Shown here piece after piece: positions 31,840-41,292 of a stretch of DNA of 64,000 nucleotides (positions are counted from its first letter, which is position 1; each line of letters starts with the position of its first letter). A program made the position numbers and the translations under genes. The stretch lies in the IMG/VR virus record IMGVR_UViG_3300024308_000302, positions 1 to 64,000 of that record, one strand, 5' to 3'. The notes under the pieces are model-generated. The model searched no databases. It was not told the DNA's origin and saw only the letters and a list, made by a program, of their open reading frames with translations.

Positions 31840-32235
31840 TTATGATTTTTCAAAAACAACAAGTTCTCGTTTTTTTCCTTTCTCATTTCGGACATGTAAC
31901 ATATCGTTCTTAGTATAGAATTCAATTGCCTTAGAGTTGTCTACAGTCGTTTTAAGGCGTATAGGAAGTGGTACAGTATCGAACAATGCTTTGCCAATAC
32001 CTTTACCTTGATGTTCACGCATAACAGCTAATTCATGCACTGTATGCCATCCATCTTGACGTGGATGATAATGAATAAAGCCTAAAACACCATCAACACT
32101 ATCAAAGACCAAAAGAGACTTTTTAGATATAGCTTCAATAAGAGCCACTTTCATTACAAAACCAATAAAATCTCGGTTTTGATTTGCGATTTTTTTGATA
32201 ATGTCTAAATCATCAACAACAGCCAAACGAATCAT
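31840..32235 (-). CDS. GNAT-family acetyltransferase
   Basis: HELAVMREHQGKGIGKAL; N..A..FY.K. Confidence 0.85.
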   Translation of the reverse strand: MIRLAVVDDLDIIKKIANQNRDFIGFVMKVALIEAISKKSLLVFDSVDGVLGFIHYHPRQDGWHTVHELAVMREHQGKGIGKALFDTVPLPIRLKTTVDNSKAIEFYTKNDMLHVRNEKGKKRELVVFEKS

Positions 32236-32848: not shown

Positions 32849-33160
32849 TTATTCAGAAACTGTAACGTATACCTTGAAGCCCCAGCAACTATCAGGGAGA
32901 AGGAAACCCGGAGAACAACCGCAAGAGCAACCTGCTTTTTGTGACCACGATACTTTTGTATCTGCTGGAAGTCCTGCCTTTTCAAGAATTTGAGGGATTA
33001 CCTCTTTTTTGTAAGCAGTGCTTGGACGATGACGACGATTTGCAAGATTCTGAAGAACAGTTTCACCTTCTGGGAAAATGAAGATCTTGCTGCGTTCAGA
33101 GCGAGCACGACGACCTCTGGTAGAACTGTTTGGGAGTATTTGAAATTTGGTAATTTGCAT
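32849..33160 (-). CDS. hypothetical basic protein
   Basis: start at MQITKF; WSQKAGCSCGCSPGF motif. Confidence 0.75.
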   Translation of the reverse strand: MQITKFQILPNSSTRGRRARSERSKIFIFPEGETVLQNLANRRHRPSTAYKKEVIPQILEKAGLPADTKVSWSQKAGCSCGCSPGFLLPDSCWGFKVYVTVSE

Positions 33161-33228
33161 TTTACACCTCACATTTCGTTTCAATGTCGCTATTTTACTA
33201 CAAATTAAACGACATTGTAAACATATTT

Positions 33229-33651
33229 TTAAATGTCTTCTTTGTACGCATCCAATGTTTCAAAAGTAAAGATGCATGACAGTTTTTGAGACAAGATAGA
33301 ATCTTTTTTCCAGAAGCCCTTATCATTAAATTTTGGTACATACCTTGCTCGAATGAAAGCATGGCGTTTTTCAAAATTGAAAGAGTAGGGTTTACCCAAC
33401 TCAGGTTCTACACAAAATTGTTCACCATCAAGCTCATAGATGAAAAAATAGTTTTTGCGAGCAGCAATGAACGTAATAGTCCAAACAGTTTCGTCAGTAG
33501 TAGGCATATCAATATGCGGATCTACTTCTGCCATATACGAATATTCAACATCTTTGAATTTGTGAAAACTGGTGTGTTCTGCTGCCGGATTTTTTTTGCA
33601 GACTCGTTTGATTTCTTCAAGAACTTCTTTATCAATTGTCTGGATAGTCAT
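33229..33651 (-). CDS. putative HxD...H (2OG-Fe/cupin-like) protein, paralog of 38094
   Basis: PHID...FNF...HAF. Confidence 0.55.
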   Translation of the reverse strand: MTIQTIDKEVLEEIKRVCKKNPAAEHTSFHKFKDVEYSYMAEVDPHIDMPTTDETVWTITFIAARKNYFFIYELDGEQFCVEPELGKPYSFNFEKRHAFIRARYVPKFNDKGFWKKDSILSQKLSCIFTFETLDAYKEDI

Positions 33652-33773
33652 CACTATAGTCCTTATTTGGGATAGGGAAATTATATCAAAAATAGGATTT
33701 TTAGTCAAGGAAAAATACGAAAATAGAAAACCCGCCGAAGCGGGTTTTATGTATATTAACAACAATTTAAATC

Positions 33774-33850
33774 TGGTGGGACTTGCAGGACTTGAACCTG
33801 CGACCTGCCGATTATGAGTCGGATGCTCTAACCAACTGAGCTAAAGTCCC
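33774..33850 (-). tRNA. tRNA-Ile2: tRNA with CAT anticodon, Ile2 type (lysidine), CCA encoded
   Basis: full cloverleaf; CCGAC-TCATAAT-CGG arm resembles E. coli ileX more than Met tRNAs. Confidence 0.9.
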
Positions 33851-33938
33851 TTAGTGTGGTGATTTAGGACGCACTAAACCACCCAGTATCATCTAAATAG
33901 TATAATCTACATTATAAATTAAGTACCTGACAATCTAT

Positions 33939-34040
33939 TTCAAGCGATTTCCAATCTTTTTATTGAAATCCCTACTTTGGATTTACTTGTCTACCAAAGG
34001 TCTTAGGTTTTGCTTGAATCAACAGGATGTCAACCTGCTG
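33939..34040 (-). ncRNA. candidate structured RNA (three-way junction plus hairpin)
   Basis: three perfect helices; own promoter TTGTGT-17-TAAAAT at 34085-34113. Confidence 0.45.
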
Positions 34041-34166
34041 AAAAACTGTTTATCCTTTTGTTCGTTTATGTTTAAGAAGGTTCTATTTTAAGCCTTTTCA
34101 TTCATTTACACAAGTCTTTTTTTAATCTTTTTTTAAATCATCTTTTTTTTATCTTTGTTTTAAAAC

Positions 34167-34251
34167 TGGTGCCCGGAGCCGGACTCGAACCGGCACGGCT
34201 TTCGCCGGAAGATTTTAAGTCTTCTGTGTCTACCAATTTCACCATCCGGGC
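34167..34251 (-). tRNA. tRNA-Leu: tRNA-Leu(TAA), copy 1
   Basis: cloverleaf with long variable arm and CCA. Confidence 0.95.
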
Positions 34252-34394
34252 TTTTTAGTCTACTCTCGTCTTGATGTGGTAATTATATAGAAATCCACAT
34301 GGTAGGTCAAGCATATTTTTTAGAAAAAACCATTAATTTTCAATAATTTAAAAACAACAAAACCGCCAGATGGCGGTTCATGGATTAGAAAATT

Positions 34395-34817
34395 TTATTT
34401 TTTGTTATGCAAATCGTAAAGGAAAACCCCAGTAAATTCAATATCCATGCCAATCAAGTCTTTGAATTTATCAGAATCACCAGCAACTGCAGATTTCAGA
34501 AGAGTGATATGAGGAACATGCGGCAAATCTTCAACAATTCCGAAAGATTTGACTGCTTTGTTATAAAAATGACTCCAATCAGTACCTTCAAGTTCAGCAA
34601 CAATCATAACCTGACCGTTTGGATTCCATTCAGAAATCTTAGAAATGCGGCCAGACAAATTGCCATTTTCATTTTTTGGATAATAAGGAAGCTGAATATG
34701 TTTGATAGATCTCGAATGATCAAAAAAAACAGTCAAATGAAGGTTTGATTTAATGTCAAAATTGGAAAGAACAGCACCAGATTCTTTGGTTACTGGAGCA
34801 GCAAAATACATAGCCAT
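34395..34817 (-). CDS. 2H phosphoesterase, T4 gp57B/Acb1-like (candidate anti-CBASS nuclease)
   Basis: HLT and HIT 2H motifs; Y.AA N-terminus and EW...G...V..L pattern as in T4 57B; lies in the tRNA cluster as in T4. Confidence 0.75.
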   Translation of the reverse strand: MAMYFAAPVTKESGAVLSNFDIKSNLHLTVFFDHSRSIKHIQLPYYPKNENGNLSGRISKISEWNPNGQVMIVAELEGTDWSHFYNKAVKSFGIVEDLPHVPHITLLKSAVAGDSDKFKDLIGMDIEFTGVFLYDLHNKK

Positions 34818-34928
34818 AAACTTTTAACTCAAACGATATTTGATAACGCTAATTATACGTTAAATAAAGAAAAAGGACAATTAAAAAATGCTAGAATAGA
34901 AAAAGGCACTCTGAGTGCCTTTGATGGA

Positions 34929-35005
34929 TGGTGGGACTTGTAGGGTTTGAACCTACGACCTAACGATTATGAGTCGTCCGCTCTAACCAACTGAGCTAAA
35001 GTCCC
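34929..35005 (-). tRNA. tRNA-Ile2: tRNA-Ile2(CAT), copy 2
   Basis: cloverleaf with CCA; near-identical to copy 1. Confidence 0.9.
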
Positions 35006-35019
35006 ATTAAACAAGAATT

Positions 35020-35103
35020 TGGTGCCCGGTGCCAGACTCGAACTGGCACGGCTTTCGCCGGAAGATTTTAAGTCTTCTGTGTCTACCATTTCACCAACCG
35101 GGC
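35020..35103 (-). tRNA. tRNA-Leu: tRNA-Leu(TAA), copy 2
   Basis: cloverleaf with CCA. Confidence 0.95.
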
Positions 35104-35108
35104 GTAAA

Positions 35109-35295
35109 TTGAACAGTCCAGAACAGGCTCACATCGAGCAATCTCCGCCCTCCACGGACGGTGTTTTAAGCTTCATCCTTCGACTTTCCCAGTTTATGGC
35201 CACTCAACTGGTTCCATCTAAGACTATGCAACTCTCTAGTCAGCCTGCAGAGCCTTCCTTCAAGTTCCTTTAAACTACCGTTCTGGACTATTCAA
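35109..35295 (-). ncRNA. 187-nt structured RNA of unknown family
   Basis: 18-bp terminal helix and internal hairpins; GC-rich; lies between two tRNAs. Confidence 0.65.
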
Positions 35296-35312
35296 TCAAC
35301 AACAAATAAAGC

Positions 35313-35389
35313 TGGCGTCTGTGGCAGGACTCGAACCTGCGACCATCCGCTTAGAAGGCGGATGCTCTATCCAACTGAGCTACACACGG
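35313..35389 (-). tRNA. tRNA-Arg: tRNA-Arg(TCT) with unpaired acceptor-stem positions 1-3
   Basis: D, anticodon and T arms essentially as in the 36621 copy; 5' CCGTGTG vs 3' CACAGAC. Confidence 0.75.
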
Positions 35390-35399
35390 ATAAAGAAAA

Positions 35400-35477
35400 G
35401 GGTGCTCTTGGTAAGGATTTGAACCTACGACTTGTGGGTTTCCGCCCACAAACTCTACCAGACTGAGTTACAAGAGC
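35400..35477 (-). pseudogene. aberrant tRNA-like element (8-nt anticodon loop GCGGAAAC, bulged T stem, ends ACCC)
   Basis: 7-bp acceptor stem GCTCTTG/CAAGAGC, D arm and TTCAAAT loop intact. Confidence 0.65.
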
Positions 35478-35484
35478 GTGAAGC

Positions 35485-35610
35485 TTATTCTGCGTGACGG
35501 TTGCGGCGTTTATCACGCATTTGACGACTGATTTTGTTATCACTACGTTTGGCGTTATCTTTCGATTTGCCCGAGAATTTTTCCATAGTGTCGCGGTAAG
35601 AACCTTGCAT
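35485..35610 (-). CDS. 41-aa basic peptide, MQGS...RDKRRNRH family
   Basis: not in the ORF track; AAGGA SD; translated by hand. Confidence 0.8.
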   Translation of the reverse strand: MQGSYRDTMEKFSGKSKDNAKRSDNKISRQMRDKRRNRHAE

Positions 35611-35718
35611 TTGGTGTTTCCTTGTATGCTTCGTTTTGATGGGATAAGTATATCAACCATTGAACCCGTTAGCAACCATTTTTTTGAATATTTTTCGCTA
35701 TTTTTTCAAAAATTTAGG

Positions 35719-36060
35719 TCAATAGACAACATTTTTAATCACACCATCCAAACTGACAGATGATTCAGCATATCCACATGATTGAAGCAACCTGTTAACA
35801 TTAGCACGACTAAAGTTTTTTGGGAAACAATAATCTTTCCCTGTAATTAATGATCTTGCAACCCAAGGAAAATACTCACAAACAGAAGCATAAGTTTCAA
35901 CATTGTTAGCAAGTTCAGTGTATGAAGATGGTTTACGAGTTTGAAAAAGAATAACAGGTTCTGGTGGGCCTACAAGCAAGGGGAGATGATATAGAAAAAT
36001 AGGTGTTTCTACTTTTTTAGTAAAAATTTTTTTCATCAAATTAAAAATATTCATATTCAC
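35719..36060 (-). CDS. hypothetical protein
   Basis: ATGA overlap with the upstream ORF. Confidence 0.7.
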   Translation of the reverse strand: MNMNIFNLMKKIFTKKVETPIFLYHLPLLVGPPEPVILFQTRKPSSYTELANNVETYASVCEYFPWVARSLITGKDYCFPKNFSRANVNRLLQSCGYAESSVSLDGVIKNVVY

Positions 36061-36239
36061 CCTCTGAAATCAGTATGCTGATAGCAATAAAGTTGAAAAC
36101 CAGAAAGTTCACGGATAGTTTTGTTTTTTTCTTCAATAGTTTCACGAAGTCTTTTAATTTCGGCTTTCCAGCGAGCATTGTCATCTTCAAGAGATTTAAT
36201 GTATTCTGGGCTTTGATGATAAGGAATATCATTTTTCAT
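36057..36239 (-). CDS. small coiled-coil protein
   Basis: 60-aa ORF with own promoter. Confidence 0.65.
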   Translation of the reverse strand: MKNDIPYHQSPEYIKSLEDDNARWKAEIKRLRETIEEKNKTIRELSGFQLYCYQHTDFRG

Positions 36240-36357
36240 ATTCGTGAATCCAATTAATGTTAGACACTGATTATATCAAAAATAAAAATAAAAAACAACA
36301 AAAACCCCCTGCTGCGAGGGGGTTTTATTCTCATATAATTAAATTCTCTGATTTAGT

Positions 36358-36492
36358 TTAAAACTGCATCGGTAGTTCACCTCTGGCACTTTAATTAAAT
36401 TTTAAAAGTTTATGGGCAATCATCAATTATACTAAATTCAATAATAGGATTAAATTAAAGTTTATGCTGCATTATTGGCTCACCTCTGGCAC
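36358..36492 (-). repeat. two minigene units (MQHKL*, MQF*) 3' of tRNA-Leu
   Basis: GTGCCAGAGGTGA-7nt-ATG CAG core, twice. Confidence 0.75.
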
Positions 36493-36529
36493 ACTCATTA
36501 ATTATCAGTAGGTTTATCGTGGTTTAATT

Positions 36530-36614
36530 TGGTGCCCGGTGCCAGACTCGAACTGGCACGACTTTCGCCGGAAGATTTTAAGTCTTCTGTGTCTACCGAT
36601 TTCACCAACCGGGC
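36530..36614 (-). tRNA. tRNA-Leu: tRNA-Leu(TAA), copy 3
   Basis: cloverleaf with CCA. Confidence 0.95.
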
Positions 36615-36620
36615 ATAATT

Positions 36621-36697
36621 TGGCCCATGCGGCAGGATTCGAACCTGCGACCATCCGCTTAGAAGGCGGATGCTCTATCCAACTGAGCTACGCACGG
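36621..36697 (-). tRNA. tRNA-Arg: tRNA-Arg(TCT)
   Basis: fully paired cloverleaf with CCA. Confidence 0.95.
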
Positions 36698-36706
36698 ATG
36701 TTTGAG

Positions 36707-36835
36707 TTAAGCGTCTTGATGACGATTGCGGCGTTTATCACGGAATTGACGGTCTTTTTTTGCAAAATTGCGGGTTTCTTTGTCACGACCTTTAGAAGTG
36801 AATTTTTCGGTCATATCGTTGTGAGAACCTTGCAT
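36707..36835 (-). CDS. 42-aa basic peptide, MQGS...RDKRRNRH family
   Basis: AAGGA SD; leader motif; co-transcribed with tRNAs. Confidence 0.8.
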   Translation of the reverse strand: MQGSHNDMTEKFTSKGRDKETRNFAKKDRQFRDKRRNRHQDA

Positions 36836-36994
36836 TTCGTATTTCCTTGTATGTTTCGTTTTGATGGGTTCATTATAGAGAAATTGGTACTGCATGTAAA
36901 GCATTATTTTCAAATTTTCTTAAAAAAACACATGATATTTTTCTTGTATTTCACTGATTTTTAAAGAAAAAGAAAAGGGCCTTTCGGCCCTTAG

Positions 36995-37573
36995 TCAATC
37001 ATCGCTCACTTCATCATCATAGCATTCATAGTTTCGGATATAGTAGGTGAAAAGTTCTTCCAGAGAATCAAAATCTTTGTCTGGGTAGTTGCTACGCAGT
37101 GAGAACTTACCATCAGGAAGTGCATAAATGTAATGTTCCTGAGTAAAAATGTTAATAATTTTATTACCATCTTTGTCCATAGGTTTGAACAGTGGAATAA
37201 GATGCTTGAGGCCAGCAATGGATTTAGCATTGCGTTCAAGATCAAGTTTGTAGATAAAAACATCAACCGAACGTTGTTGGCTAAACGCACGATACCCCAT
37301 GCCATAAAGACCAAAAGATTCAATGAATTTTTGCGAAGCCGCATAACGAATCTTATCAGTCCCCGAACCAGATTCATGCATCAGAAAATCAAACCGTTCT
37401 TGTTCAGTCATATCCATCTTCAATGTTTCAATGGTGATGGATTCATTGAGAGAAGCAATCTCTTGACCAATAGAAGAAGCCTGATCTTGAAGTGGTTTGA
37501 TCTGCTCAAAAATATCATTACGCTGTGCTTTAAGTTCTTCACGGCGAGCAGTCAAAAGTGCAAGAGTAGTCAT
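36995..37573 (-). CDS. hypothetical protein with N-terminal coiled coil
   Basis: 192-aa ORF. Confidence 0.75.
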   Translation of the reverse strand: MTTLALLTARREELKAQRNDIFEQIKPLQDQASSIGQEIASLNESITIETLKMDMTEQERFDFLMHESGSGTDKIRYAASQKFIESFGLYGMGYRAFSQQRSVDVFIYKLDLERNAKSIAGLKHLIPLFKPMDKDGNKIINIFTQEHYIYALPDGKFSLRSNYPDKDFDSLEELFTYYIRNYECYDDEVSDD

Positions 37574-37644
37574 TAATATAGCCTCATTGAATTTGAATCA
37601 ATTATACATAAAAGACAGTGCCAAAGCAACCTAAAAATAAGATT

Positions 37645-37839
37645 TTAAGGGATGCCATTCAAAAAATCTTTAATACGAGATTCTGCATCAGCACGATAAA
37701 TGTACCCAGATCGACAAGAACCACGAGGCCAATGAGTGATGAAGGTATTGCAAGGACGCCACCAGAACAGCCATTTATATTCGCAAATATAAACTTTTTT
37801 ACCATCATCACGAACCGCTTCACGAATACGAGTTTGCAT
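37645..37839 (-). CDS. small hypothetical protein
   Basis: AAGGGA SD. Confidence 0.65.
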   Translation of the reverse strand: MQTRIREAVRDDGKKVYICEYKWLFWWRPCNTFITHWPRGSCRSGYIYRADAESRIKDFLNGIP

Positions 37840-37848
37840 ACAATTCCC

Positions 37849-38031
37849 TTATTCGTAAACTACCAGATCCCAAGTAACATATTCATGATCTGAACAAGAA
37901 CTGTTACGTTCAAGTACACCATTTTTAACATTTTTGGTACGTTCAACAAAATTACGAAGCTCATCAAGTGATAGAGAATCACGATCATGCATAATACCAA
38001 TTGAATCAACTACAGTACGTTTTTTATCCAT
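37849..38031 (-). CDS. small hypothetical protein
   Basis: GAGGTG SD. Confidence 0.7.
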   Translation of the reverse strand: MDKKRTVVDSIGIMHDRDSLSLDELRNFVERTKNVKNGVLERNSSCSDHEYVTWDLVVYE

Positions 38032-38093
38032 AAATCACCTCAAAAATAGTTCAAATGGAAAGCCATTATAAACAAAATACAACGAAAAGACAA

Positions 38094-38486
38094 CTATTCT
38101 TCTAGCACAAAAATACAAGCAAGTTTATCATCAGGATGCAAAGTATCGCCCCAAGCATCTTCATTATCAAAATGTTTGACATTTTTCTTTTTCAAGAGGG
38201 CATGAAGTTCAGTAAAATTGAATGAATATTTTTTATCCAATTCAGGCTCAATACAAAATTGCTGACCATCAAAATTGTAGATGAAAAAATAATTTGGCTT
38301 AACTGCAACAAAACGAATAGTCCAAAAATTTTCTTCTTTCACTGGCTCATCACGATGAGGATCAACCTCTGTCATATAGCAATATTCAACACCGTCAATT
38401 GTGAACTTTTCTGTGTAAGCAGACGCTTTAACACGCTTGCAACGTTCTTTGATGGCTTTGACAATTTCTGGATGATTAGTAAGCAT
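38094..38486 (-). CDS. putative HxD...H protein, paralog of 33229
   Basis: PHRD...YSFNF...HAL. Confidence 0.55.
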   Translation of the reverse strand: MLTNHPEIVKAIKERCKRVKASAYTEKFTIDGVEYCYMTEVDPHRDEPVKEENFWTIRFVAVKPNYFFIYNFDGQQFCIEPELDKKYSFNFTELHALLKKKNVKHFDNEDAWGDTLHPDDKLACIFVLEE

Positions 38487-38574
38487 GGTGAATACCAGTA
38501 ATTTGCAAGAAGATGATTATATCAAAAATAAGAAAATATGAAAAGCATCTTAATGAACAAGATGCTTAGAATAA

Positions 38575-38856
38575 TTAACTCTCGTTAATGAAAAAAGAAA
38601 CTCCAGTTTTGGGATAAAAAGTAGACTTCCAAAGATCACCATGTATATTGCCACCATCAAAAATGATGATTTCATAAATATGATGTTCATCAATAAGTTT
38701 TAGCAAAGAATCATAACTAACAGATTCCATATGTAGTTTAGAATCAACATTTTTAATAACGTAAGCATGGCCAACTGCATCATCAGATAGCATAGAATTG
38801 ATAGCAATGCCAAGATTACTCATGTAATCATCTGAATAAGTGATAGATTTTTGCAT
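38575..38856 (-). CDS. hypothetical protein
   Basis: start at MQKSIT (GGAG SD). Confidence 0.7.
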   Translation of the reverse strand: MQKSITYSDDYMSNLGIAINSMLSDDAVGHAYVIKNVDSKLHMESVSYDSLLKLIDEHHIYEIIIFDGGNIHGDLWKSTFYPKTGVSFFINES

Positions 38857-38939
38857 ACAATCTCCAAGATTATGATAAGAATAGAAGTTTATTATAGCAA
38901 ATATAAAAACAAAACTCAACTTATTTAAAGCAATAAAAA

Positions 38940-38957
38940 AACCACCCGAAGGTGGTT
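38940..38957 (-). terminator. terminator, AACCACCCGAAGGTGGTT family
   Basis: UUCG hairpin plus U-tract; copies at about 39637, 55615 and 57497. Confidence 0.85.
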
Positions 38958-38962
38958 AATTA

Positions 38963-39559
38963 TTAAGCAGCAAGTAATTCTTTTCTTCGTATTCCACAAG
39001 CAATTGCATTATCGATTGCTTGAGACTTGTAAGTCTCTAAATCATATATTTTATACATTTCATGAAAGTTTAAATAACACATTTGATAACAAGGATAAAA
39101 TGTAACTCGAAGATCATTTCCACAAATAAAGTTAATATAAGTTAGTAAATCGTCAAGTACAGAAGTAAAGCAATATTCAAAGGAAATTTCAGTAGATTGA
39201 ATAGTATTTAAATAATCCTTATTATGAAGATGATAAGAATGACTTTTACAAAGAGAAAGAATGTGATTTTCAAGAGACATAGCACGAAGCTTTGAAATAT
39301 CAGGATCTTTTGTGATAATTTTGAATAGATGAACAAAATTAATATTACTATCTTTAAATTTTTGTTTTAGAGCAGAAACTCTGCTACCGAAAGTAGAAGA
39401 ATGACCTATTTTAATAACACCATTTTTGAGACGCAATACATAAACAAAGTGAATATAATCTTTAGTGTTTCCATCCATTTCTTTAGAATGCATACGTCTT
39501 GGATCAACACAAGAATAGTTAGAAATAAAGAGTTTAGATCTGCGATGAAAAGCATACAT
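38963..39559 (-). CDS. GIY-YIG/T5orf172-like nuclease-domain protein
   Basis: FVYVLRLKNGVIKIGHS...R...L and a downstream E..IL. Confidence 0.6.
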   Translation of the reverse strand: MYAFHRRSKLFISNYSCVDPRRMHSKEMDGNTKDYIHFVYVLRLKNGVIKIGHSSTFGSRVSALKQKFKDSNINFVHLFKIITKDPDISKLRAMSLENHILSLCKSHSYHLHNKDYLNTIQSTEISFEYCFTSVLDDLLTYINFICGNDLRVTFYPCYQMCYLNFHEMYKIYDLETYKSQAIDNAIACGIRRKELLAA

Positions 39560-39659
39560 AAATATAAAATCTCATTTTTCAAGTTTAATAATTATATCAA
39601 AAATAAGCTCAATGGTAAAGCAAAAACAATAAAAAAACCACCCGAAGGTGGTTTGTGTT

Positions 39660-39826
39660 TGGTAGCTGTTGATGGGGTCGAACCACCAAGTTAGGACTAT
39701 TTCACAAGCTTCAGAGTACGTGCAATCTCGTCCGACAAGTTATTTCATCTTCACTCCGCTTCCACATCCACGGCTCTTGGTGTCTGCACGTATGACACCT
39801 CCTTCCGATCCAGTTTAGCAACAGCC
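39660..39826 (-). ncRNA. 167-nt tRNA-like RNA (acceptor stem, T arm, CCA) with internal pseudoknot, SD and short ORF
   Basis: GGCTGTT/AACAGCT-A-CCA; GGTGG-TTCGACC-CCATC; GGTGTC/GACACC and TACGTGCA/TGCACGTA. Confidence 0.8.
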
Positions 39827-39840
39827 ATAAATCTTAAATA

Positions 39841-39924
39841 TGGTGCGGAAAGCGGGACTCGAACCCGCACGCCTTGCGACACTGGCTTCTAAGACCAGCA
39901 CGTCTACCATTTCGTCACTTCCGC
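39841..39924 (-). tRNA. tRNA-Leu: tRNA-Leu(TAG)
   Basis: cloverleaf with long variable arm and CCA. Confidence 0.95.
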
Positions 39925-39931
39925 ATAAAAT

Positions 39932-40045
39932 CAAAGTGGTCTACTCTATTTATTTTAGCACCGAGTAGTATTCCATACTTTCAAGCTATATTGGCAACCG
40001 AAGCTGTTATTCCAAAACAAACCACTTGAAAGAAGTGCTAAGTTA
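39932..40045 (-). ncRNA. candidate structured leader RNA (pseudoknot plus cUUCGg hairpin)
   Basis: two crossing 7-bp helices; CAGC-TTCG-GTTG; AGTAT-GGA-ATACT. Confidence 0.45.
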
Positions 40046-40142
40046 TTGCTGCAAGATTTTGTATCTCCGTTTCGTCTTGTGGGCCTATTATAGTGTAATG
40101 CAAGGTAACCGTCAAGCTTTTTTACTTCTTTTAGAACAAATT

Positions 40143-40227
40143 TGGTGCCCAAAGTCGGACTCGAACCGACACTCCTTTCGGAAGCGGATTTTGAATCCGC
40201 CGCGTCTACCAATTTCACCATATGGGC
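40143..40227 (-). tRNA. tRNA-Leu: tRNA-Leu(CAA)
   Basis: cloverleaf with CCA. Confidence 0.95.
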
Positions 40228-40689: not shown

Positions 40690-41292
40690 TTAGAGTTTTT
40701 GATTGGTGTCCACATAACCTAAGTAGGCACTAATTTTTTTCTCAACATATTCTTTACTTTGTGTAAAATCATTATGGTGCTCATCACGCTGCATATAGCC
40801 TTTAGGGAATGTCATAGTCACATTCATGCCAAGTGCTTCACCAGCAATACCACCAGCCCAATCAGCACCTGTTTGACCACCTGAGATGAGGTTGGTTATA
40901 GGCCAAAATTCATGGACTTTGGAAATAACAAGATAAACCCACTGGTTCAAAGATGCTTGAGATTCGTTCACAAGTTGCTCTGCATCCAAAGTATTAAATT
41001 TGTTGGGTTGATTATCCTTAGACCATTCACCTGACAAGGAATAGATTCCATTACCAGCCACATTCAAAGTGGAAACATTGTGTTTTTTGCAAGCAGCATA
41101 AAGCATACGAGCAGCCACAAGTGGGTCAGTGCTCAAATGGATAGAAACATAACGTTCACCAGCTTCACGTTTGGTCAAGCGTTCACCGGCTGAAGAAAAG
41201 TCTTCTGCGATAGCGACAGTAAGATCTGCTGTACGAGCATTGTGTACAGTTCGTGGCTTGTACTGTGCAGATTCATGTTCGATAATATGCAT
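40690..41292 (-). CDS. SLOG-superfamily (putative molybdenum carrier-like) protein
   Basis: RT..N...ADLT.A, LNVAGN, ISGGQTGAD.AG motifs. Confidence 0.75.
   Translation of the reverse strand: MHIIEHESAQYKPRTVHNARTADLTVAIAEDFSSAGERLTKREAGERYVSIHLSTDPLVAARMLYAACKKHNVSTLNVAGNGIYSLSGEWSKDNQPNKFNTLDAEQLVNESQASLNQWVYLVISKVHEFWPITNLISGGQTGADWAGGIAGEALGMNVTMTFPKGYMQRDEHHNDFTQSKEYVEKKISAYLGYVDTNQKL

Follow-up and report, generated by a model that had tools for sequence, protein, structure and literature searches.

Acb1 of phages cleaves 3′3′-cyclic GMP-AMP (3′3′-cGAMP), cyclic triadenylate (cA3) and other signals by means of a catalytic tetrad formed by two HxT motifs (PMC9117128). PDE-9 of Burkholderia phage BCSR5, a phosphodiesterase (PDE) that falls in the same structural group as T4 Acb1, also cleaves 3′3′-cGAMP and continues to do so, more slowly, when its lid is removed; the specificity of such enzymes is set by the 2H core and not by the lid (Doherty et al., bioRxiv 10.1101/2025.08.21.671373). 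Here, we analyzed a gene from the IMG/VR virus record IMGVR_UViG_3300024308_000302, a 290,157-bp element (G000, hereafter the record) from which one stretch of 64,000 nt, hereafter the window, was taken. The gene is located in a tRNA cluster of the window, and its product is called P0001 (Table 1). After analyzing the sequence comparisons and the predicted structure, we are left with little doubt that P0001 is a real, probably active 2H phosphoesterase and that its clade, which is rare and lid-less, is a sister of Acb1.

The two HxT motifs that the first-pass annotation of this DNA had pointed out are both present in the open reading frame (ORF) of P0001, with NLHLTV at residues 25-30 and PHITL at residues 102-106. 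In a 35-member family alignment (A3), H27, T29, H103 and F128 are invariant, and T105 (34 of the 35 members), W64, A74, L106, L121 and G123 are nearly so. The pattern between the motifs, which had been likened to that of T4 57B, proved to be approximate: Y4-x-A-A of P0001 corresponds to Y12-V-A-A of T4 and SEW64 to EVW74.

Searches that started from single proteins yielded little. P0001 alone matched nothing in Pfam, NCBIfam or the PDB (phmmer), including the LigT models of Pfam (PF02834 and PF13563), and a word-based protein search found one relative. PHROG 755, which is the T4 57B/Acb1 family (T4 57B matches it at 5e-68), was matched weakly by P0001 (E = 2.2e-4), and the second of the three paralogs in the record matched it at E = 1.2e-6. 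This paralog 2 scored 24.3 bits (E = 2.7e-5) against the Acb1 model of Pfam, under its 27-bit threshold, and 20.4 bits against a LigT model, under the threshold of 23.3. A six-frame search of the record with the Acb1 model of Pfam returned nothing at E ≤ 1, a negative that we attribute to the coarse initial filter of the search and give no weight. In a single pairwise BLASTP comparison (E = 0.003), P0001 and T4 57B shared 21% identity and their two HxT motifs fell in register, and tblastn against 50,697 phage records returned six weak matches (26% identity, E ~3e-4) from Pseudomonas siphophages of the Ab18/PaMx11 type. A profile made from four sequences gave only chance matches in the PDB. Therefore, we searched 1.84 billion cluster representatives exhaustively with a profile, which recovered 40 clusters at E ≤ 1e-3. 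Because so few clusters were found among so many representatives, the P0001 family is rare.

Pfam Acb1 was matched by 15 of 42 relatives (E ≤ 0.01; best 1.7e-12) and LigT_PEase by 5 of the 42 at the same cutoff. When A3 was aligned by hhalign with a canonical Acb1 profile built from 14 sequences (A4), the probability was 98.2% and the E value 3.1e-14 over 129 columns. Against PDB sequences, the A3 profile matched 9Q2G (BCSR5 PDE-9), which is entitled "Anti-CBASS protein Acb1" (CBASS, cyclic oligonucleotide-based antiphage signaling system), at 1.6e-8 and Acb1 of Erwinia phage FBB1 (7T26) at 5e-5; on the LigT side, the values were 7e-3 for the LigT-like protein of P. horikoshii and 0.48 for E. 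coli LigT. In a maximum-likelihood (ML) tree, P0001 and paralog 2 are sisters, the branch of P0001 is long (1.36 changes per column), and paralog 3 clusters with its orthologues on related contigs.

The predicted structure gave the same ranking. The AlphaFold model of P0001 reached a predicted local distance difference test score (pLDDT) of 95.6 and a predicted template modeling score (pTM) of 0.88, and it supersedes an earlier model from a four-sequence alignment (pLDDT 72.7). Foldseek placed 9Q2G first among PDB structures (E = 5e-6, TM score 0.75), followed by 7T26 (2.7e-5) and 1VDX (3e-4), and the top matches of the model in BFVD and the ESM Atlas were Acb1 clusters. With VIA-align, the Acb1-type structures (7T26 and PDE-9) gave Z scores of 13.9-14.1 and root-mean-square deviations (rmsd) of 2.4-2.6 Å over 126-131 residues; FBB1 Acb1 (PDB 7T26/7T27), which has a compact 2H fold like that of P0001, stood at Z 14.0 and 2.5 Å over 126 residues. 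Other 2H enzymes scored lower: 11.1 for the plant cyclic phosphodiesterase (CPDase), 10.4-10.6 for LigT and PH0099, and 8.9-9.8 for the penguinpox cGAMP PDE (9BKQ) and the 2′,5′-PDEs rotavirus VP3 and coronavirus ns2. These eukaryotic-virus enzymes share the 2H fold and the logic of evading immunity by destroying a nucleotide messenger, but they are larger than P0001, more distant in sequence and structure, and have other lids and substrates. LigT/ThpR enzymes (PF02834/PF13563; LigT 5LDI, PH0099 1VDX) likewise have the 2H fold and two HxT/S motifs. However, they were weaker in every comparison, and at ~175-185 residues they carry extra elements that P0001 lacks. The first-pass annotation had named a LigT-type enzyme as the closest structure that would speak against its proposal, and this objection falls away because profile and structure comparisons both rank Acb1 enzymes first. 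Judged by its sequence and its model, P0001 is a 2H phosphoesterase, and among known proteins the Acb1 enzymes of phages are closer to it than LigT.

Using the functional residues that PMC9117128 defines for T4 Acb1, we looked up the equivalent positions in the alignment. The tetrad H44, T46, H113 and T115 is kept in P0001 (Table 1), as are the base-stacking residues Y12 and W74, which correspond to Y4 (aromatic in 34/35) and W64 (34/35). The aligned aromatic residue Y90 is W81 in P0001, and Y110, invariant in the Acb1 set, is H100. Most members of the P0001 family have a recognizable Acb1-like "L/F-D-R" start of the last strand. Both Acb1 and P0001 are encoded by phage-borne stand-alone genes for proteins of ~140-150 residues, P0001 being shorter than T4 Acb1 by 8 residues at the N-terminus and by 5 at the C-terminus. 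PDE-9 (PDB 9Q2G/9Q2Y), the best PDB match of P0001 in both the profile and the Foldseek search, shares 15-18% identity with it.

The ORF was unbroken, without insertions or deletions, in contigs of four public runs, and a variant strain differed from it at nine sites, seven of them synonymous and two non-synonymous (S37A and H40N). P0001 is a real gene under purifying selection. These data bear on the idea that P0001 is a decaying or non-catalytic 2H remnant left in a repeat-rich tRNA region, an idea to which several features lend something: the region is composed of diverged duplications, and P0001, which no longer has the C-terminal family motif "FDRHG", is more derived than any other member of its clade. 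However, besides the intact frame and the pattern of strain differences, P0001 keeps its four catalytic residues, has a homologue of 84% identity and the same length, is predicted to fold with confidence and has promoter-like and terminator-like sites of its own, and we consider a remnant highly improbable. A 113-residue ORF on the opposite strand (34407-34748) was not counted as a separate gene, as it is nested entirely within the P0001 gene.

As the first-pass annotation had stated, the gene is located within a tRNA cluster. Its neighbors are tRNA-Leu(UAA) and tRNA-Met(CAU), and the ten tRNA genes of the cluster (33774-40227) are all on its strand. Because promoter-like and terminator-like matches flank it, the gene looks self-contained, which suggests that it is a transcription unit of its own. 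The matches around it are pattern matches only, with 7 promoter sites against 3.4 ± 2.1 expected in the region and 4 terminator-like sites against 1.7 ± 1.3 expected.

Table 1. Features of the P0001 locus and its surroundings (window coordinates)
Feature	Position	Strand	Basis
P0001 ORF, 140 residues, predicted lid-less Acb1-related 2H phosphoesterase	34395..34817	minus	ATG start; homology, predicted fold, strain comparison
First catalytic motif, H27-L-T29	34731..34739	minus	read from sequence; aligns with T4 Acb1 H44/T46
Second catalytic motif, H103-I-T105	34503..34511	minus	read from sequence; aligns with T4 Acb1 H113/T115
Sigma-70-like promoter match (TTGTCC, 17 nt, TATAAT), ~35 nt 5′ of the P0001 start codon	34852..34880	minus	consensus match
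Terminator-like hairpin and T-run, 16 nt 3′ of the P0001 stop codon	34360..34379	minus	consensus match
tRNA-Met(CAU), upstream neighbor	34929..35005	minus	context
Terminator-like hairpin after tRNA-Met(CAU)	34902-34922	minus	consensus match
tRNA-Leu(UAA), downstream neighbor	34167..34251	minus	context
Promoter-like site ahead of tRNA-Leu(UAA)	34282-34310	minus	consensus match
200-residue protein with circularly permuted YpsA SLOG domain (PF12694, E = 1.7e-10), just past tRNA-Leu(CAA)	40690-41292	minus	

From its fold and catalytic residues, we therefore argue that P0001 is a working phosphodiesterase, with a substrate that these features do not fix. We infer the substrate class and the counter-defense role from its relatives, and by this analogy the chances that P0001 is a nucleotide-messenger phosphodiesterase used in counter-defense appear to us evenly balanced. 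By analogy with T4 and FBB1 Acb1 and with PDE-9, the HxT/HxT tetrad would carry out a metal-independent acid-base cleavage of a 3′-5′ phosphodiester in a small nucleotide second messenger, and the cleavage would proceed via a 2′,3′-cyclic phosphate intermediate. Loss of the messenger would then silence a host signaling defense, which could be CBASS or possibly type III CRISPR or a related system. The P0001 gene is placed in a plastic tRNA/accessory region, and with P0001 and its two diverged paralogs the element may have several substrate specificities at its disposal. Paralog 2 (record 251045-251434, minus strand) and paralog 3 (record 141439-141798, minus strand) are 45% and 38% identical to P0001, respectively, and both HxT motifs are kept in all three proteins.

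Two aspects of context were considered in favor of the messenger phosphodiesterase. The tRNA/accessory region also encodes a SLOG-domain protein (Table 1), a member of a nucleotide-binding family. Additionally, a locus search with a 12-sequence alignment found 1 viral and 12 metagenome loci, and almost all relatives of P0001 are stand-alone genes that occur on phage contigs among small genes of the early or accessory kind. Also encoded on those contigs are terminases and a primase-polymerase; SNF2 and DUF3987; or dUTPase, thymidylate synthase and a methylase. No conserved neighbor family was found across 17 loci. Stand-alone relatives without a conserved neighbor are the usual pattern of counter-defense genes.

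Several observations weigh against a role in messenger cleavage. P0001 has no match to the Acb1 model of Pfam (PF23474; threshold 27 bits) at E ≤ 10, and the ML tree separates canonical Acb1 from the 41-row P0001 family with support of 97/95. The model begins at strand 1 and stops 5 residues past the last strand and has neither of the known lids: the C-terminal lid of Acb1 (145-152) is missing, and the alignment to PDE-9 covers residues 16-165 only, beyond the 15-residue N-terminal lid of that enzyme. The lid residue W147 of T4 Acb1 falls on K140, the last residue of P0001, so that the tryptophan is absent, and the position is missing altogether in 21/35 family members. The base-stacking F107 is replaced by L98 (L in 23/35), and E141, which reads the adenine N6, is replaced by Y134 in P0001 and by K in both paralogs; the 14/35 members with E at this position all belong to another subgroup than that of P0001. 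R51 and R94, near-invariant in the Acb1 set, are not conserved either. Moreover, T4 Acb1 without its lid is inactive in vivo, and the phage 2H PDEs of two structural groups cleaved 0/18 messengers (bioRxiv 10.1101/2025.08.21.671373), so the fold alone does not predict messenger cleavage. Some distant family members occur in RNA-repair or translation contexts. The first-pass description of an Acb1/57B-like 2H enzyme thus stands as far as the nearest relatives are concerned and gives way in the details. On the evidence of sequence and model, P0001 is Acb1-type in fold and chemistry, yet it fails several features that define the Acb1 family proper, namely the curated model, the lid, E141, F107 and W147, and it falls into a separate clade.

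These replacements could also mean that P0001 is a phosphodiesterase for a different or still undescribed small molecule and that the paralogs are tuned to different ligands, with 2′-5′-linked oligoadenylates, ADP-ribose-derived cyclic phosphates, 2′,3′-cyclic nucleoside monophosphates (2′,3′-cNMPs) or a new messenger as candidates. The base-reading E141, F107 and W147 of Acb1 are not only replaced but vary by subgroup, with E in the "FDRHGxE" subgroup and K in that of P0001. The long branch of P0001 and the presence of three paralogs that share 35-45% identity, all with the tetrad, fit this explanation as well. Furthermore, some groups of phage 2H enzymes have been described as narrow in specificity or as having no known substrate (Doherty et al., bioRxiv 10.1101/2025.08.21.671373), and a NUDIX hydrolase is encoded two genes upstream in three related loci. 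However, no positive evidence favors any one of these ligands, and the core of P0001 is most like structural group 3, whose activity on CBASS and type III signals is broad. We regard an alternative small-molecule ligand as quite unlikely.

The location of the gene raises another explanation, in which P0001 hydrolyzes 2′,3′-cyclic phosphate ends on tRNA or rRNA cut by host anticodon nucleases or ribotoxins. In such RNA end healing, P0001 would work with the T4 Rnl1-type ligase of the element and a kinase as separately encoded parts of tRNA repair, and this role has been proposed for 2H enzymes of jumbo phages (Iyer et al. 2021, PMC7824862). The P0001 gene has tRNA genes on both sides, only 735 nt separate paralog 3 from a tRNA-Gly gene, and a homologue in the related contig L020 is within a 9-tRNA array; under random placement, the probability that at least two of three paralogs lie within 1 kb of a tRNA is ~0.03. 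However, accessory genes of all kinds tend to gather in the tRNA regions of large phages. In T4, 57B and the tRNA cluster are ~1.4 kb apart and are separated by four ORFs. We take the position of P0001 among tRNA genes as weak evidence either way.

The repair parts themselves were also considered, with a Trl1-like healing-and-sealing set as the model, in which a ligase, a kinase and a 2H CPDase would be supplied in trans and Tpt1 would remove the 2′-phosphate. A T4 Rnl1 homologue is present in the record just outside the window (66183-67316, minus strand; E = 8e-27 to T4 RNA ligase 1), but its gene is ~32 kb from the P0001 gene and they share no operon. T4 has Acb1 alongside a full tRNA repair system, so that finding Rnl1 cannot tell the two roles apart. 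A small P-loop kinase in the record matches PNKP at the P-loop only, and none of the three paralogs has it or the Rnl1 homologue as a neighbor. No Tpt1, RtcB or Rnl2 was found in the record, and the product of Acb1 carries a 3′-phosphate (PMC9117128), which would still be a block to Rnl1. A PNK3P-type 3′-phosphatase domain was not found in the record either, which speaks for end healing by P0001 insofar as no other protein is assigned to the healing of 3′ ends. Additionally, P0001-type proteins are near neutral (isoelectric point 6.3-6.5) and not basic, and both sequence and structure place them nearest to messenger nucleases of the Acb1 type, with LigT/ThpR and Trl1 CPDases farther away.

Two distant relatives come closer to RNA metabolism. 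In P0018, a fusion with an RF-1-like domain is encoded beside RtcR and RtcB, but this RtcB context was seen once among ~12 contexts, and no RF-1 domain was found in the record. The family member P0005 adjoins the peptidyl-tRNA hydrolase PTH2, but PTH2 in the record (166858-167322, minus strand) does not adjoin P0001. Taking both sides together, we view RNA end healing as the main rival of the messenger phosphodiesterase, a tentative option that is rather unlikely to be correct. As to the details of these loci, P0018 (L007 6001-7128) is a bacterial-type family member in which the 2H domain is fused to a middle domain that P0012 and P0015 also have, and to the RF-1-like domain, whose GGQ motif reads GGG. 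The PTH2 adjacency was seen in one element (L005, the same as L021) and is not conserved in the record of P0001, and it was rejected as a functional link.

In a further proposal, the lid-less clade would not be anti-CBASS and would have as its substrate a signal or RNA end that the known messenger panel does not include, the three paralogs being a small arsenal with distinct specificities. The targets may be 2′,3′-cyclic-phosphate tRNA fragments, as sensed by RtcR/CARF, or an undescribed messenger, and the arsenal may be tied to the unusually large and redundant tRNA complement of the element. We think this proposal unlikely.

The 2H phosphodiesterases of phages increasingly look like a varied set of tools against nucleotide-based immunity, in which the substrate range follows the variation of the core fold. 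With a rare and minimal lid-less clade close to the broad-spectrum Acb1 group, nature provides a test of the contributions of the lid and of the glutamate that reads adenine, and three diverged copies in one element suggest that specificities are partitioned among them. If the substrate proved to be an RNA end, Acb1-type enzymes would be connected to tRNA-directed defense and repair. In practical terms, P0001 provides a short, well-folded candidate for assays, and no new principle is involved.

The record contains 35 tRNA genes, every one of them on the minus strand, among them ~11 tRNA-Leu(UAA), 4 tRNA-Arg(UCU) and 7 tRNA-Met(CAU), and the related contig L020 has the same tRNA set. Two tRNAs have a CUA anticodon and are amber-suppressor-like (record 179840-179914 and 180849-180923). 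TAG or TGA recoding was considered on account of these two and found no support in ORF-length statistics, and translation table 11 was used. Two tRNA-like genes, at window 35401-35477 and record 163041-163117, received anticodon calls of 2 and 4 bases, and they could be pseudo-tRNAs or frameshift-suppressor-like tRNAs. The tRNA region contains diverged direct repeats (33359-33550 versus 38200-38391, 72% identity; 35575-35652 versus 36800-36877, 82% identity), which include small ORFs beside tRNA-Leu/tRNA-Arg pairs. Because the region is built of such repeats, repeated duplication of tRNA-plus-ORF modules is suggested. A GNAT acetyltransferase is encoded nearby (window 31840-32235).

The record, listed as a provirus, is an internal stretch (~268,255-558,411) of the 1,539,155-bp metagenome contig Ga0247725_1000001, and homologues are found on contigs of 0.5-1.86 Mb. 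It encodes cell-like proteins, including an M17 aminopeptidase (190065-191486), a Na+/H+ exchanger (142645-144009) and TnpB (264692-266527). PHROG matches in the record are few, and the 64-kb window has only two ORFs of at least 330 residues. The element could be a huge phage or a provirus, or neither of these; its listing as a provirus inside a 1.54-Mb contig, together with the cell-like genes, limits what can be said about the defense systems that it faces. Near-identical sequence to window positions 33000-37000 was present in public runs of 15 studies, which comprise metagenomes of subsurface, freshwater, food, plant, soil and silage origin, along with several runs of single organisms. Because these studies are so varied, the matches point to a widespread host or element.

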